DNA of 64,000 nt, from positions 517,556 through 581,555 of the forward strand of contig RDEW01000034.1 in assembly GCA_011109175.1 (NCBI GenBank), in the 5' to 3' direction. The number at the start of each line of letters is the position of its first letter. Within the stretch, counting starts at the first letter, position 1. A program made the position numbers and the translations under genes. Source of the stretch: Dicyema japonicum. Taxonomy: Eukaryota; Animalia; Dicyemida. Below the pieces are notes generated by a model that had not been told where the DNA came from, searched no databases, and saw only the letters and a list, made by a program, of their open reading frames with translations. This document shows, piece after piece, positions 8,343-53,590 of the stretch.

Positions 8343-8589
8343 CACAAAACTAAAATAACAACTTATTAATATATTTAAATATGCATAATTATTTTTAATA
8401 AATTAAGTAACGACGTGTGTGTGTAGCGTGACGTTATGTGGTCCACCAATTCAAAAAATTCAAAAGGATTTGGCAACGCCCAGAGGGCTTCTAATGCTTT
8501 CCCGAAAAGGACCATTAGACCATTTCCTCCCGGGGGGTCATTATCAACCCCCCGGTGATGTGCTTCAAAAAAGTCCAAACATTCCCGGA

Positions 8590-10895
8590 GAAAACCCTCA
8601 GCCCACTGTGGAGAAAGGAAATCTACTGTTCTCCAATTGAACATCAACGGAATTAAAGGCAAGGTCAGGGAACGACTTAGATCAGAAGATCGACGTGGCT
8701 ATGATCCAAGAAACTAAACTTCTCATGAATGATGCCATTATTTCATTCCTTGAATACGAGGCTATCAGGATGGACCGTAAAAAGAGAAGAGGGGGTGGAC
8801 TACTTACTCTATTCAAAAAGAACCTGAAATGCAGAGACATTACTTCGGAAGTGAGGAATCTTGTTGGAAATGACGAGGTTACTTAGGCAATTGGAATCTC
8901 GCTTGGGACAACAAAAGGAAGTCTGTGCCTCGTGAACATCTACTTGCCTCCTCCCGACTCCTGCCCAAAGGACTATGACCCGACTCCACACCTATCAAGA
9001 TTGTCTATCTACGAGGAGATCATCATATGTAAAAATATAGCACCCCTTATGGTTGTCAACCCAACAGGCCGACACGACACGAAGCTATTGTTATTGAAAA
9101 CGGACTCCCTAATCATACTGAATGACCCAGCAAAAAATTCAAGGACCCCACTCAGGGAGACGGATCAGCCTACCTCTCCCGACGTAACACTCTGCTCCAC
9201 ATCATTTTCATCGAAAATTAACTGGTCAGTCTTCTACGAAACAAGAAGCGATCATAACCCGATTGTGATGAAGATCAAGAGAGAAGTCAAATTGAGGAGA
9301 ACTTGGACAGCTTCAAATCGCTAGAAAATGCGATCAAATACTTTACTTGCACAATCCTAGAAGCAAGATCATTGGCTATTTCCAAGCATCATCTAAATTC
9401 CTCTAATGGTCGAGAAATGTCGGCATTGATCAAGAACACAGAAAGTCGGAAGTGCTTTTCTCTTCATGCAGTAAACTGAAGAAGGATTCTAACCCAGTTT
9501 ACTTCTCGGATAAAGACGTGAAGAATGGGCAGCGTTTTAGAAGCACAACGTACTCTGCCGATCCCGACAACAGTTCAGTAGTGTTATTGAAGAACCTTGG
9601 AGATATGGGAGTCGGTTTACAACTAATCAATTAATTGGAATGTAATACAGCTGTTATGGAAGCAAGAAAACAGCCGACCTATTCTGAATCCTGGAAAACC
9701 TAAGGAAGATTCGGCATCATTTAGACCTGTGTCATTGTTATGTTCCGTATCGAAAATCGTGGAAAGGCTTGTGCTTGGGAGAATCAAGGCTTTCTTACCA
9801 GAAAAGGATTTTCAACACGGATTCAAGAGCGATTGTACTACATTAACGTACCAACAGAAATTAACCAACTTCATTAGAGATGGATTTTCAAACGAACCAA
9901 GGCATTTGAAAACAGTCTTATGTTCCATTGATATTAACAAGGCCTTTGATTCTATTTCGAGAAAAATATCATGAAAGAAAATTTTCCAGTCGGAGATCCC
10001 GGGGAGCTTAAACTTTGGATAACCAATTTCTTAAGTGGACGGAGGGGACGATTATGCTTCGGAGGACTGAAATCAGTTTCGCGTTTTCTCCAAACGATGT
10101 CCCCCAACGATCTCCTTTATCTCCCGCTTTATTCAATTTATACCTGGCCAAACTCCCGACACCGGAATCCAATAATGATGTTCTACTATCATATGCGGAC
10201 GACATTGTTTTGGCCTCGCGTGATCGGGATATTCAAAATGCTACAAAAAGATTACAAATTAACCTGGACCGACTCAACGCCTGGGTAATGAAGAACCGAC
10301 TCACGGTAACATTCCAGAAAGTCGATCATGTCTATGTTTACTTCGGACAAAAGGTTGGGGAAGAAGACTGTCACCTTAAAATTGGACAACGATGAAGTCC
10401 CTTTCAGCAAATATCAAAAGATCCTGGGCGTGACACTGGATACGCACTTATGTTTGTCACCACACGTGGCAAACATTGTTCTGAAGTGCGAGAAGAGGAT
10501 CAATGAATTAAAATGTTTATCTGGAATATGGAAGACAGGACCCACCCGGTCTTGATGAATATCTACTAACAATACATTAAACTATGCTTCTCGTGCGCGT
10601 GTGCTTCGTGGGGACCTTCATTATCATGGACGAATACTAAGAAAATCGAGGACATAAAAAAGAAGGCTTTCAGAATCACGGAGCGGTGGACTTGTGGGAG
10701 ACACAGACCCGGACCGACTACTCTAGAGGCCAGCATGCGGGAAGGTGGCCATGCAAATACAGTCAGCCGCCAATACGAATTATGTGGGCACGAGGGGGAG
10801 CACCAGGAAAGGATGAGGATTTTGGTAGAACGCATCGAGATCACGTGATAGTTAGTTTGGTTTTATTGTGGTCTTGGGTGTTAAATAAACTCTAG
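8590..10895 (+). mobile_element. Degraded Ingi/Vingi-like (I-group) LINE, APE + RT
   Basis: APE motifs QLNINGIKGK, IQETKL, GGGLLTL, NIYLPP, SDHNPI. RT motifs FRPVSLL, QHGF, DINKAFD, VPQRSPLSPALFNLY, YADD, KILGVTLD. 3' tail TTAGTT...AAATAAA. Many frameshifts. Confidence 0.9.
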
Positions 10896-13594: not shown

Positions 13595-15185
13595 TATTAT
13601 TATTATTAATTTTTTTTAAATAATAACAATTTATTGAAGAATAAAACCAAATAGTTAAAGGCTACTGGCTGCTCTCAGGATTGAGAGCGCATTTCCCCTT
13701 ACGATCTGTAAGGAGATGCGCTCAATGAGCCAGCCCTTCTCTCTGACATCTTTCCTCCTTTTAGCGACAAACGATCCAATTTTGTTGAGCAGGGCTAACG
13801 ACCAGCTTCCTATGACTCCTGAAGTTTCGACTGCGACTGGTTCAAATGTGTACTGCTCGCCGAGGCATGTGTACTTCTTTGCTTTAAGTATTTCTGCTTT
13901 CTCTGCATCTGAGCCTGGATTTGTCGCACTCATTGCAATATTGGAAGGGGAGAAGCTATCTACGCAGGTGGCATCCCAGGCAAGGTACTTCCCAGCATCC
14001 CACGGGAACAGAGTCGCTCCATCCGGCCTTCTGTTTGCCGTGGCAAGTCCTAGGGGCTCCATCTGGACAGGGAATCCGGCAGCTTCTAGTCCCCACGCAA
14101 TAACCTTGTTGATTGGACTATGTTTCAGGCTCTTTCCAGCGCTCCTTCGCCAGGAAAGTGCGTGGAGTCCTTTCGCGTCGACTATTTCTCCACATCTACA
14201 GCGATGGATTGCGAAAACATCGATTCCGAGGCGGACGCAAACCCCAATCCTCGTGGAGTCATCGTCCAGAAAAGTTTCGAGTGAAATGCACGGGAATGCT
14301 TTGAGCCATGCACCACTTACGTTTGTTGATGCGGTAGCCAGACAAGCCAGACGATGCTGGTCGAGTTGTGGTTTTAGCTCATCGATGGTCCTCGAACATG
14401 ATGATTGACTTGACATTCCGTTCCTTCAGTTCGGTCGGATGTGATCCGAGGACAAGAGGTGCAAAGCAGAGAAGGCGCATCCAAGCTTCTTGGGTGTTGT
14501 CACTGACTGCTTTGGTGATTAGTTTTGAGAGACACGTGGCAGCTGCTAGGCGCACCGACTTTGGGATTCTGAGTGGGATAACCCTCTCTGATACAAGCCG
14601 GCGCAGGCGGAGTAAACATTCGTCCGTGTTAGATAGGTCCAGGACTGAACCAGAGAGCGGTTCATTTTGCCTTGTGGGTTCCCAAGGCATGTTGGGCATG
14701 ACCAACTTGAGAGACACTGAGCAGTCCGTCTTGTCAGCTTGTTGCACCCAAGGTGTCCAAAATTTGGGCAACGGGAACATTGGATACTATATTTCCTCTT
14801 GTTTGCCTCTCCACAGATAATGCAGGGGATAGACGTGCGAGAAATAAGCTCTTTGGGTTTCGGTGTTGGTTTCGGATCCTTTTCCATTGTCATGTTCAAT
14901 CCAAAAAGTAGAACGGCCAATACACCACAACACCACAAAAAATCGATATTTATGATTAACCCCGGATACACCGAGAAAGAAGTTAAAGTAAACAACTAAT
15001 TAAATGTATCCAGTTTCCACTTCTACAGAAACAGAGTCCATCCGGAATCAACATAAAGGGTAAAAGACGTCCATAGTTGCAGTTGTGGAAACCCCTCCAG
15101 TGGAGTGGGGGAGAGCAAATGATCCTTTTTCGTGCCGGCCTGGCACTGAGCGCCACCTAGAAAGGTGGATCACATGACGCCACTC
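13595..15185 (-). mobile_element. CRE-clade (REL endonuclease) non-LTR element with N-terminal PHD finger and internal deletion of the RT domain
   Basis: PHD at 14687-14824. Pre-RT motif IPLRIPKSVRLAAATCL...AWMRLLCFA is joined directly (about 14400) to the post-RT SGAWL, CRCG..DAKGLHALS knuckle and REL motifs RPDG..PW..GK.LAWDATC..KY..VAVETSG..RGNA. A/T-rich tail. Confidence 0.9.
15120..15185 (-). ncRNA. Candidate HDV-like (nested double pseudoknot) ribozyme at the CRE 5' end
   Basis: Manual fold: P1 GAGTGGC/GGCGCTC, P2 TGATCC/GGATCA, P3 ACC/GGT with loop TTTCTA, P1.1 TT/AG, P4 TGCC/GGCA, J4/2 CGAAAAA. All elements are in HDV order. Confidence 0.6.
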
Positions 15186-15797
15186 TAATAGGATGAAAGC
15201 GGAGGAACAGACGAACAAAACTGAAACTTCAACCAATTAGCCACGAAGCACCACATGGCGCCACGCGGATATTTAATGACTCTGTTAGTGACTTCCTGAT
15301 TTTTAGCCTACTTGTGTAAGAATGAGGGTGAAATAACGATTAATCACAATGTACTTGTATAATTTAGCATTTGTTGGATAAATTGCGATTGATGGTTGAG
15401 ATACAATCAACGTTGCTTCCAAGAAATTTTTGAGTCATCCGGTTTTCCATATGTCTCGAGAAAGTAATGAGCTAATATGATTTTCAGGATGTTTAACGTA
15501 ATATAAATAATTTTGTTGTTTTGTGTGTTGGTTTGATGCAATACCTTTTATATTTAGTAAATAGGACTATGAAAACCTTAGCTGGGAATATATCAAGTGG
15601 TCAGGATGTCCTGTATTTCTTACATTACCACATTGGTTTTTCGGTTATCCCTGTCAGTGAGGACAATACCATTAGTATATGGGAATGTAATTTAATTTTT
15701 GTTAACAGACTGTTTGTTGCCACGTACAGCTTGAAGAGTGGTTCAAAAATGGAAAACCACGTGGAACTCCATTTATAACTTCGATTTTATTTTATAA

Positions 15798-46685: not shown

Positions 46686-47121
46686 CATTAACAATTTCTA
46701 ATTAAAGACACTTCCGGGAAGCGATGTGATCCATAGCAGACAACTCGAGGAGAATCCGAAAATTACTAGTAGCTAAGACCACTTAATTAGTTGGCATATA
46801 AAAATATTGAATTTGTTAATGTAGACACGTGACCTTGATTATATCCTGTTCTCCCGGTGATATTCTTTCCCAGCATACATCTCTTTGAAAGTATCCGCTA
46901 TTATGTGAATTCTTCCACTGGAGTAAGGAAGAGAGAAATCATTTTTGGATGCCGCCCTTGAATTGGGCGTCTCTTAAATTGCGTGGATCCAATGATGATG
47001 CCTCTAAGAATTAAAGGAAACAAAGGACGAAGAGGAAATACTTCTATCAAGTAGGTGGATCTATGTAAAAATTATCAATTTTACAATAATATTAAAATTT
47101 ATATTAAATATAATAATTTGA

Positions 47122-50560: not shown

Positions 50561-50811
50561 GTTTCTTGTGTTTTCATACTTTTCTATAACCATTATGCCA
50601 AGGCGATAAGTGCTTATACAGTCTGGCTTTTGATTTTGAATTTTTGACAGAAGAGTAATTTAAAGATTGAATGAATTTGTTTTTCATGACATGTAGCATT
50701 GTCGAGGAATATAAGGATTTTTTGAGTTTTCATTTTTCATTATCCTTTGTCCAACATAGTTACAGCACGAAAAAAAAGAAATTTTTTATTTGCTCTGTTT
50801 AAAAATTTCAT

Positions 50812-53590
50812 ATGGCTCGCCGACGACGTGGTGGCATTTGGAAAAAAAACCACACTTTCCCCTATCTTCACGGTGGACTAATAAGGAAGACCTGCGCCGC
50901 TGCAGAGACGTTAAGGCAAACCCTGGACCATCCAGAATAGTCTAACTAAAACAATAAATGGAATCAAGAACAAGATAATCGAACTTGGGACATTTGTGAA
51001 AGAAAATCACATTGATCTGTTGCTAATTCAAGAGTCTAAACTTTCTCCAATTCACAGTAATTCACAGTAATTCGCCGTGACAGAATTGGCAAACTTGGTG
51101 GGGGTCTTCTCACAGTTATCCGCAACGGCATTCCGTTTGAGGACATAACCAACAGTGCTTACACTATGCTTAAAGGATATGGAAATCTCGAACTTTTGGT
51201 TACCAAAATACGATTCCCAAGACTATCAATAACAATTGTCAACGCATATCTCCCACCACTGAGTTCCTGCTCGTCCAGTGCCCCCAGACTCACTCCTCTC
51301 GCGTCACTAAAGGATGTGATTATCTGTGGTGACTTCAATGCGAAGCACCCACTGTGGCTGACAGGACAAACCTACGACAAAAGAGGGAAGATGATAATTG
51401 AGGACCTCCACAGCCTATGTATACTCAACGATCCTGCATCTCATACAAGAACACCTACTCGACGTAACTATAAACCTTCTTCTATCGACATCTCATTGTC
51501 ATCACCGTCCTTGGTCCCTCTTATTGACTGGTTAGTGAAGTATGACACCAGAGTGACCACAATCCAATATTTTTGGAGGTCAAAACGAGGTCATGGATAA
51601 AAGGACAATGCCCAACGATAAATACAGCCTTGCGAATTGGAAAGGATTCAAGGAATACGTCGATAATTGTATTGGACTACTAAATTTACCCACTTTTCCC
51701 TCCGTCGAACAATTAGTGAAATGGTTCAACTCCATTATAAACGATGCGAAAAAGAAGTACATTCCTATGGGGAGACAACCTACGTCATCAAAACGTTTCA
51801 ACACAACGACAAAACATCTGATCAGAGAACGAAATAATCTAAAGATGGTAAAATCGCCAACAGAAGAGATCATCAGAAAAATACGAGAATTGAACAGAAA
51901 GTTCGACAACAACATAAAGACAGAAAATGCAAATAGATGGACGAGACTATCGAAGGCTCTCTACAAAAACCCCCCAATGCAAAGAGTGTGGAAGTGGATC
52001 AAAAACATCAAAAGACCCTCCCCAGAGAGAAAAGTCGAAGTCTACATAAAACCAGACATTCTGATAAAATATTACACATCTATATCCTACAAGAAGTTTT
52101 CAAAAGAACACCAAGTATTCCTGAAAAAGATTGAACCGAAACGATCCGATGACTGGATCTTATTTACTAGTCAGGATGTTCCATATCCAAGGCCAAAGGC
52201 CAGACAACATAACCAAATGTGAACTGAAACACCTAGGCTATCGAGCCCTGGAACTATTCAGCCTATCCATTAACACAAATACAATCCCTGAAATATGGAA
52301 GAAGTCTCTAATCAGACCTATCCGAAAACCCAACAAACCAATAGATGAACCATCTTCTTATCGCCCAATATCTATTCGAAGTCCGGTCTCAAGGATCCTT
52401 GAAAGGATTGTTTTGGAAAAAATACAAGACTCAATCTCAATACTTTCGACCCAGCACGAATTCCGGGATAACCATTCGACGACAACACACCTTACAACCC
52501 TCACACAATTCATTGTGGAAGGATTGAACTCCCCCAAACCCCATCAGAGGACAGTACTTATATCCGTGGACATCACAAAAGCGTTCGACTTAGTCCCTAG
52601 GAAACTCCTAACAAAGAAAATATGAAACCAACATCCATCCGAACCTGAAACTTTGGCTTGGAAACTTCCTAAATGGAAGACGAGCACAAGTACTCTGCAA
52701 CAACATCAAATTAAGATCTCGCTATTTCTCGAATGGAGTCCCTCAAGGCTCCCCACTATCACCCCAACTCTTCAATCTCTACATAAACGACATGCCACAA
52801 ATCTGCAATGAAAACTGTCTAATCCTCTCTATGCCGATGATATCATTCTTGCCTCCAAGGACAGAACATTCAATCAGCGACTCAGTTGGCTCAACAAATG
52901 CTCGACAACTTGGAACTATGGCTCTCGAAGCGGAGACTTGACACATCAGCAGCAAAGTCCTTTGTCACACTGTTTACTACCTACAAGAGACAGCTCTGTA
53001 TCGAACCAAAAGTCTTTATGAAGAACGAAGCTATCTCTATTAACAAAACACCGAAGATTCTGAGAGTAACCTTTGATCAGGGACTCACCTTTATCCGGCA
53101 TGTTGAAAACAAAGTAACTTCTGCTCTAAAAAAATGAGAATTTTAAAAGTGCTCTCAAAAACACTTAGAGATCAAACTGGGATCCTTGCCACAATTTACA
53201 AACATTTTATCAGACCAACGATGCCATATGCAAGTCTTTCATGGGCAATGCAAATGCCACGATCTTCCACATTGAAATTATCTACAATCGAGGAGACTGC
53301 AATAAAGGTTAATTGAACCAGACACAAATCCAACCATTGAAAATTTTTAATCGAATTACAACGGAAACTCTTAAAGGAGGCATTTCTACCGAGCTGCCCT
53401 ATATTACATGCATTATCGAAATATCTACAATCATACAGAAATTTTGAGCCGATGCCATGTCCAATGAGAAGAGCTGTTCAGGATTCTCGACCCGCCTGAC
53501 TCGTCCTCTCCTTTGTCGGTCTGGGATCAATTAGTTAGATGAGAACTTTTATTTCTTTCTCTTTTGACCCAGTGATCATGGGGTAATAAT
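50812..53590 (+). mobile_element. Near-full-length single-ORF Ingi/Vingi-like LINE: leader + 2A-like peptide + APE + RT
   Basis: MARRRRGG..DLRRCRDVKANPGP, then IV.L.INGIKNK, IQESKL, GDFNAKH, YRPISI, DITKAFD, GVPQGSPLSP, YADD, KILRVTFD. Tail GGGATCAATTAGTTAG...(TAA)n. Frameshifted. Confidence 0.92.

Follow-up and report, generated by a model that had tools for sequence, protein, structure and literature searches.

A hepatitis delta virus-type ribozyme fold inside a short interspersed element family of Dicyema japonicum

Ribozymes resembling that of hepatitis delta virus (HDV) are found at the 5' ends of R2, R4, RTE, LOA/Baggins and L1Tc/ingi (Pr77) retrotransposons (PMC3185411, PMC4035085, PMC5786205). 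Here we analysed a 64,000-nucleotide stretch of the Dicyema japonicum genome (contig RDEW01000034.1, positions 517,556 to 581,555; hereafter the window, whose own numbering is used throughout), which contains a 62-nt module of HDV type on the minus strand at 15181-15120. The module lies within a copy of a short interspersed nuclear element (SINE) family, F1, and recurs near the 5' end of a long interspersed nuclear element (LINE) family, F3, and inside a second short family, F4. Its helix order (P1, P2, P3, P1', P4, P2') is the same as in the LINE 5'-end ribozymes, and it resembles them in having a G at +1, a C opening the joining segment J4/2, and a position at the front of a LINE of the apurinic/apyrimidinic endonuclease (APE) type. 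L1Tc, like F3, has an N-terminal 2A peptide. The LINE 5'-end ribozymes cut at +1, whereas for the module the cut is predicted 6-10 nt from the start of the LINE, with an in-frame ATG upstream of it. The module also differs in its first P1 pair, which is G-C.

In NARTc, RIME, SIDER and the R2 SIDEs, a LINE 5' end with an HDV-like fold is likewise joined to a LINE 3' end, and one Dicyema copy, L055, is built in exactly this way. These elements carry the fold at their 5' terminus, whereas in F1 and F4 the module is internal, 58-92 nt behind a head. Some trypanosomatid SIDER ribozymes are adequately folded but inactive (PMC4035085). For RTE and Vingi LINEs, Kojima described a pattern in which SINE bodies stem from LINE 5' regions (PMC5786205). 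As in F1, such SINEs carry a piece of LINE 5' sequence between the head and a LINE-derived tail, and families with a common body swap tails, which can be compared with F1 and F4 (PMC5786205). That paper reports no ribozyme fold in SINE bodies, whereas in F1 the borrowed piece is a ribozyme-type fold, and the F1 head is neither tRNA-like nor 5S-like. Ribozyme-bearing retroelements also include the Schistosoma Sm-alpha hammerhead SINE, the retrozymes, and twister variants of S. mansoni LINEs (PMC4918200, PMC8501958). They are similarly abundant, non-autonomous and equipped with a small self-cleaving-ribozyme motif, but of another ribozyme class, with demonstrated cleavage and in some cases circular RNA. 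Compared with these retroelements, the copies analysed here have fixed ends and retain the sequence upstream of the fold.

The 62-nt module and its conservation

The motif quoted in a preliminary description of this DNA (minus strand, 15185-15120) is identical to the letters of the window. Within it, the module at 15181-15120 was delimited by reading the sequence, by a strict descriptor, by its score of 93.8 bits to a covariance model (R1), and by covariation. P1 pairs GGCGUC (15181-15176) with GGCGCU (15154-15149) at six of six positions (G.U, G-C, C-G, G-C, U.G and C-G, two of them wobbles), and J1/2, AUG (15175-15173), leads on to P2, in which UGAUCC (15172-15167) and GGAUCA (15125-15120) form six Watson-Crick pairs. 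P3 consists of ACC (15166-15164) and GGU (15157-15155), paired at all three positions around L3, UUUCUA (15163-15158). After J1/4, CAG (15148-15146), P4 pairs UGCC (15145-15142) with GGCA (15136-15133) at four of four positions around a 5-nt loop. J4/2, CGAAAAA (15132-15126), begins with the candidate catalytic C, C15132, and the HDV-type register places the predicted cut between U15182 and G15181. The pairing of P2, P3 and P4 agrees with what had first been described.

For P1, two registers had been proposed. GAGUGGC/GGCGCUC was dropped, having one mismatch in the window copy and two in the family's usual sequence, and the alternative GGCGUC/GGCGCU is the fully paired register given above. 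A family's usual letters are here those of aligned copies and contig counts, no full-length consensus having been built. A proposed P1.1 of TT:AG is weak; the usual L3 of the family, UGUCUA, instead offers UG to the CA that follows P1. The window copy departs from its family at two places, with U at 15149 and U at 15162 where C and G, respectively, make up 96% of the depth in contigs of four public runs. The first P1 pair is G-C in the alignments of F1, F3 and F4, and the G.U of the window copy is a private C-to-U change; a few diverged copies of the module carry G.U at this place.

Other parts of the module also vary among families. L3 differs in both sequence and length; a UG in L3 could pair with the CA that comes after P1 in F1 and F4, and the LINE F3 allows a single G-C pair only. 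P1 of F3 contains a U.U mismatch. In nearly all families J4/2 has a candidate catalytic C followed by purines, reading CGAAAAA in the window copy and CGAAAA in F3 and in a second LINE, at 8430 in the window; it is UCAAGA in F4 and CAUAAAAA in another family.

Conservation of the fold was measured with model R1, for which 13 F1 copies were used and whose structure comprised P2, P3 and P4; P1 was added afterwards as a pseudoknot. It recovered 118 modules in the 339 kb searched. Across this alignment, 90.7% of cells, which count copies rather than independent events, form standard pairs, compared with 81.8% in shuffles, and none of 500 shuffles reaches the observed value. In 17 of the 19 pairs both partners have changed, the covariation score comes to 0.284 compared with 0.142, and sliding the 3' partners by 1-3 columns cuts pairing to 23-58%. 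An alignment to R1 leans toward P2, P3 and P4, not toward P1. P1, which lies outside the model, is still 87.7% paired, and its C3-G has turned into U3-A in the LINE. A MAFFT alignment of the diverged modules put the 3' strand of P2 out of register and was replaced by the covariance-model alignment.

The changes are readily seen in P2, which is UGAUCC/GGAUCA in F1, GGAUCC/GGAUCC in F4, UGGCUC/GAGCCA in F3, UGGUCC/GGACCA in the LINE at 8430, and CGGUUC/GAACCG elsewhere. P4 ranges from 4 to 8 bp across families, with unrelated sequences. Such variation of P4 is typical of a peripheral helix in HDV-like ribozymes. The order P1-J1/2-P2-P3-L3-P3'-P1'-J1/4-P4-J4/2-P2' is present as had been claimed, and all four helices covary across families. 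Because P1 to P4 covary across LINE and SINE families alike, we conclude that the HDV-type nested double pseudoknot exists and that selection maintains it, in the non-coding SINEs as well.

A second hairpin stands about 10 nt 3' of the module in F1, F3, F4 and the family represented at 46900 in the window. In the window copy of F1 it reads CCCCACUCC-ACU-GGAGGGG (15092-15110, minus strand), as read from the alignments. Its stems differ by family (CUCC/GGAG, CCACC/GGUGG or CCCC/GGGG), with F3 having CCACC GUCC GGUGG. Judging by this hairpin, conservation at the LINE 5' end may extend beyond the 62-nt module.

The F1 SINE and its LINE source

The element that contains the module is an F1 copy of about 313 bp (15268-14956, minus strand), recognized by its homology limits, target-site duplications and copy number. 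It consists of a head, the module, a body, and a LINE-type tail ending ...TCTCGGTGTATCCGGGGTTAA. The upstream target-site duplication, tcattaaatat (15279-15269), matches tcataaatat after the SINE tail (14955-14946), both read on the minus strand. Homology to 30 other loci extends from about 15274 to about 14947, ending before an ATG at 14892, and the aligned F1 copies have unrelated flanks, target-site duplications and a 3' end ...TCTCGGTGTATCCGGGGTTAATAAATAA. In the assembly (67.5 Mb, 377 contigs), a 211-nt query around the motif gave 1772 candidates, and all 40 that were scored are 92-96% identical; a search with the pattern of the module start gave 798 to 813 genomic matches. Contig depth rises about 1000-fold between 14951 and 15278, with element boundaries in the contigs at 15265-15268 and 14955. 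F1 is thus short, free of open reading frames (ORFs), present in many copies with target-site duplications, and provided with a 3' tail in common with a LINE, as expected of a SINE.

The head spans about 87 nt (15182-15268, minus strand). Its first 16-30 nt, which begin GCGTGGCGCCATGTGG, resemble both the LINE 5' terminus GCGTGGTGTCATGTGG and the start of the module. In local alignments of head and LINE 5' end, the observed score was reached by 0 of 1000 shuffles for F4 and by 31 of 1000 for F1. A tRNA-derived head was considered and rejected, since ARAGORN found nothing and an Rfam E-value scan contained no tRNA, 5S, 7SL or other small RNA.

F4 has 646 candidates of about 250 bp; it has the start of the head and the module in common with F1, and a different tail. 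F3 is the 5' end of a LINE. Its copies begin (A)ATGTTAGCGT, followed by GGTGTC at G1, the first base of the module, and downstream of the module they encode the 2A peptide GDVETNPGP (...LLILLCGDVETNPGP) and a Pfam Exo_endo_phos_2 domain. The module sits 6-10 nt from the F3 5' end. Copy L055 is an internally deleted F3 LINE, with the LINE 5' end joined to a 3' tail, CTTTCTCGGTGTTCCCGGGGTTATTAAA, that matches the F1 tail; the F3-type LINE is therefore the likely partner of F1. Because the head resembles the LINE 5' terminus, the tail matches the LINE and no small RNA is present in the head, F1 is assembled almost wholly from LINE parts.

In F3, a reading frame opens with an ATG at the second to fourth base and crosses the whole module, 56 codons in all, before reaching the 2A peptide; examples are L043:1654-1490 (-) and L034:1507-2898 (+). 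As judged from these frames, the same 62 nt in F3 are both coding sequence and a conserved pseudoknot.

The window holds further modules. One, at 8430-8514 on the plus strand, has a long L3 insertion and scores 22.6 bits to R1 (E 0.004). Preceded by the leader TAGCGT, it opens a decayed LINE whose endonuclease (8932-9321) and reverse transcriptase (RT; 9729-10392), both on the plus strand, were identified by Pfam. A (GT)n microsatellite at 8400-8416 (+) directly precedes this LINE. A third, diverged module-like stretch belongs to another repeat family (46938-46999, minus strand; nhmmer E 0.02); its helices are ambiguous in the single copy, and related copies exist. At 50690-50930 (+), the sequence ...cagcacgaaaaaaaagaaattttttatttgctctg stands upstream of another 2A-bearing LINE (...DVKANPGP, about 50890-50930) and is like the 3' part of the module, that is, J4/2 plus the flank TTTGCTCT. 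By this likeness, the 5' end of that LINE probably carries a decayed module here.

At least four further module families were seen in the genome, with P2 5' strands UGGUUC, UGGUUU or UGGCUU, or with J1/2 UUG. They keep a leader TTA(A/G)CGT before G1 (e.g. G000:C223:66751-66785, C24:350958-350992 and C179:582862-582896). The LINE 5' end is ragged by a few bases among copies, lying at -4 to -11 relative to G1 across families.

Element ends and the neighbouring reading frames

The preliminary description had the motif define an element 5' end by self-cleavage, with the element boundary at 15181-15185. F1 copies instead extend about 87 nt past 15185, a result that it had itself named as grounds for abandoning the idea, and all 100 sampled F1 copies with a perfect module start keep the upstream sequence CCTATTAGAGT. 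About 96 of 100 F4 copies keep the head, and about 66 of 69 LINE copies keep GTTAGCGT, with one starting near G1. Upstream of the predicted cut there are about 87-92 nt in F1, about 58 nt in F4 and 6-10 nt in the LINE. Among genomic 5' ends of F1, F4 or the LINE there was no excess of copies that begin at G1, and no pile-up of contig loose ends at 15181 was found in the contigs. In most intact LINE copies an ATG at -10 shares its frame with both the 2A peptide and the endonuclease, and a 3-nt 5' variant preserves this frame. Since this ATG is upstream of G1, a cut at G1 would detach the ORF from its start codon. Given that the copies retain what precedes the predicted cut, we infer from these ends that the module does not define element 5' ends.

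Some F1 copies, together with flanking sequence, occur in head-to-tail repeats with a 468-bp period (L003, L004, L005 and L008; e.g. G000:C290:515354-516033). These repeats are mutually identical, and their P1 starts GGTGTC. By their sequence, the arrays look as though an insertion site had been duplicated in tandem, and less like those of retrozymes. A circular-RNA, retrozyme-like route for F1 was rejected, as F1 copies have fixed ends and target-site duplications.

Beyond the SINE tail lies an element with a PHD finger (Pfam, E 2e-6), a frameshift and a 253-amino-acid C-terminal ORF (13655-14892, minus strand). The C-terminal ORF has unnamed relatives in a protein atlas. Between 14892 and 13655 Pfam detected the PHD finger only, and no RT is present there. 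The SINE is inserted about 50 nt upstream of the ATG of this element at 14892. The module-to-ATG distance given earlier holds; the assignment of this ORF to the same element does not, since the motif was found inside an independent SINE with its own target-site duplications that ends at 14956. On this reading of the sequence, the motif is foreign to the PHD/ORF element, and the annotation is corrected accordingly.

Shape, cleavage and competing explanations

Our preferred reading, in which we place slightly better than even confidence, is that SINEs took the module, a ribozyme-type fold, from a LINE and keep it for its shape, with no part in defining 5' ends and with cleavage that is either attenuated or irrelevant to the transposing RNA. 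The 62-nt double-pseudoknot domain would have had its origin in APE-type LINEs that encode an N-terminal 2A peptide, at their 5' end, and would then have been carried into non-autonomous retroposons. F1 combines a head that mimics the LINE 5' terminus with the module of the LINE 5' end, a body and the LINE 3' tail, and selection keeps the fold in the lineages that found new copies. The RNA that is reverse transcribed would be uncut at G15181, and the domain would most likely work through its shape, as a cis-acting element taken from the LINE. RNA stability is one candidate role, and access to the translation or ribonucleoprotein machinery of the LINE is another. Self-cleavage could be attenuated by the G-C first pair of P1 and the short L3, or limited to RNAs that do not transpose.

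A related proposal, to which we assign about one chance in four in informal terms and which we hold only tentatively, is that the HDV-ribozyme fold was co-opted as a central SINE domain for a job other than end-trimming. Such a job may be a regulated cut between head and body, or the docking of SINE RNA on ribosomes or on nascent LINE protein. The signal recognition particle (SRP) domain of Alu is an example of such docking.

Several points weigh against a fold kept for shape. J4/2 has a C followed by an A-rich stretch in nearly all families, and this C is kept although it lies in a mutable CpG in F1 and the LINE, which decays in dead copies; 20% of the contig depth is T at 15132. Such conservation looks, from the alignments, like selection on a catalytic core and not on shape alone. 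The transposing RNAs could be an uncleaved minority of a population that cleaves. The covariation counts also come from about three large families plus about ten single diverged copies.

These points lead to the strongest rival, an HDV-like ribozyme active in vivo that cleaves transcripts of the LINE and the SINEs just before G1, with genomic copies descending from the uncleaved fraction. We regard it as possible but distinctly less probable than the preferred reading. The cut might serve release from read-through transcripts, removal of a capped leader, or a limit on SINE RNA. The complete helix order is backed by covariation, and G at +1, J1/2 AUG and J4/2 CGAA are all present, with the J4/2 C kept across families. 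The same three features are found in the HDV and CPEB3 ribozymes. HDV-like ribozymes are moreover established at LINE 5' ends and in short LINE derivatives (PMC3185411, PMC4035085, PMC5786205). However, copies of three families retain the upstream sequence, the in-frame ATG of the LINE would be lost, the first P1 pair of the family is G-C and not G.U, and L3 and P1.1 do not appear conserved. A ribozyme behind a SINE head would also be expected to truncate the SINE (Kojima 2018, PMC5786205). Rfam gave no HDV-type match in the whole window at the gathering score, and no HDV, CPEB3 or drz match at E up to 10 for the F1 site, F3 or F4, although its HDV-type models are narrow and blind to pseudoknots, so that this is weak evidence.

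Alternatively, the constraint may act on DNA or on protein, with the module forming part of a LINE internal promoter like L1Tc Pr77, or of the N-terminal frame, and the pseudoknot being incidental. The opening 16-30 nt of the LINE recur in the SINE heads, the LINE ORF crosses the module with its 3-nt 5' variant in frame, and Pr77 is both promoter and ribozyme in trypanosomes (PMC3383444, PMC4748587). This explanation nevertheless seems unlikely, as it leaves unaccounted for the compensatory double changes in P1, P2 and P4, which occur even in non-coding SINEs, and as the internal module of the SINEs is distant from the SINE 5' end.

A chance resemblance, in which SINE sequence with two local hairpins can be drawn as an HDV fold, is very improbable. 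A loose HDV descriptor was uninformative, matching the reversed window (14 matches) as often as the real one (13 matches). The minimum-free-energy fold of a 71-mer was no better than shuffles (z = -0.54), although nested folding cannot represent pseudoknots, and P1 and P2 face competition from a local hairpin, CCACCU/AGGUGG. On the other side, the long-range helices P1 and P2 covary across families, and the slid controls collapse. The strict descriptor, which was tuned after the fact, matches only at 15181 in the window and gives a single match in 30 dinucleotide shuffles. Taken alone, the single window copy is suggestive of an HDV fold and short of decisive.

Least credible of all is the original proposal of a ribozyme at the 5' end of a CRE-clade retrotransposon that defines this end by cutting read-through transcripts, for which proximity alone speaks (the motif is 228-289 nt upstream of the ATG at 14892), and which conflicts with the separate SINE limits and duplications described above and with other copies that stand in unrelated flanks, and is refuted by copies that reach about 87 nt past 15185.

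HDV-like ribozymes at LINE 5' ends were already known, as were short derivatives of LINEs in which they remain 5'-terminal. What is new here is a complete fold behind a head, in the middle of a SINE, in hundreds to thousands of copies and kept by compensatory evolution, together with a predicted cut that falls inside even the source LINE. This is the opposite of what the literature leads one to expect (PMC5786205). Since the fold is kept behind a head in abundant SINEs, it would therefore have a function without cleavage, or its cleavage would be gated, and either option bears on the purpose of conserved SINE bodies. If true, a co-opted fold would account in structural and functional terms for one class, at least, of these long-puzzling bodies, and it would offer an example from nature of a ribozyme fold put to another use, either non-cleaving or gated.

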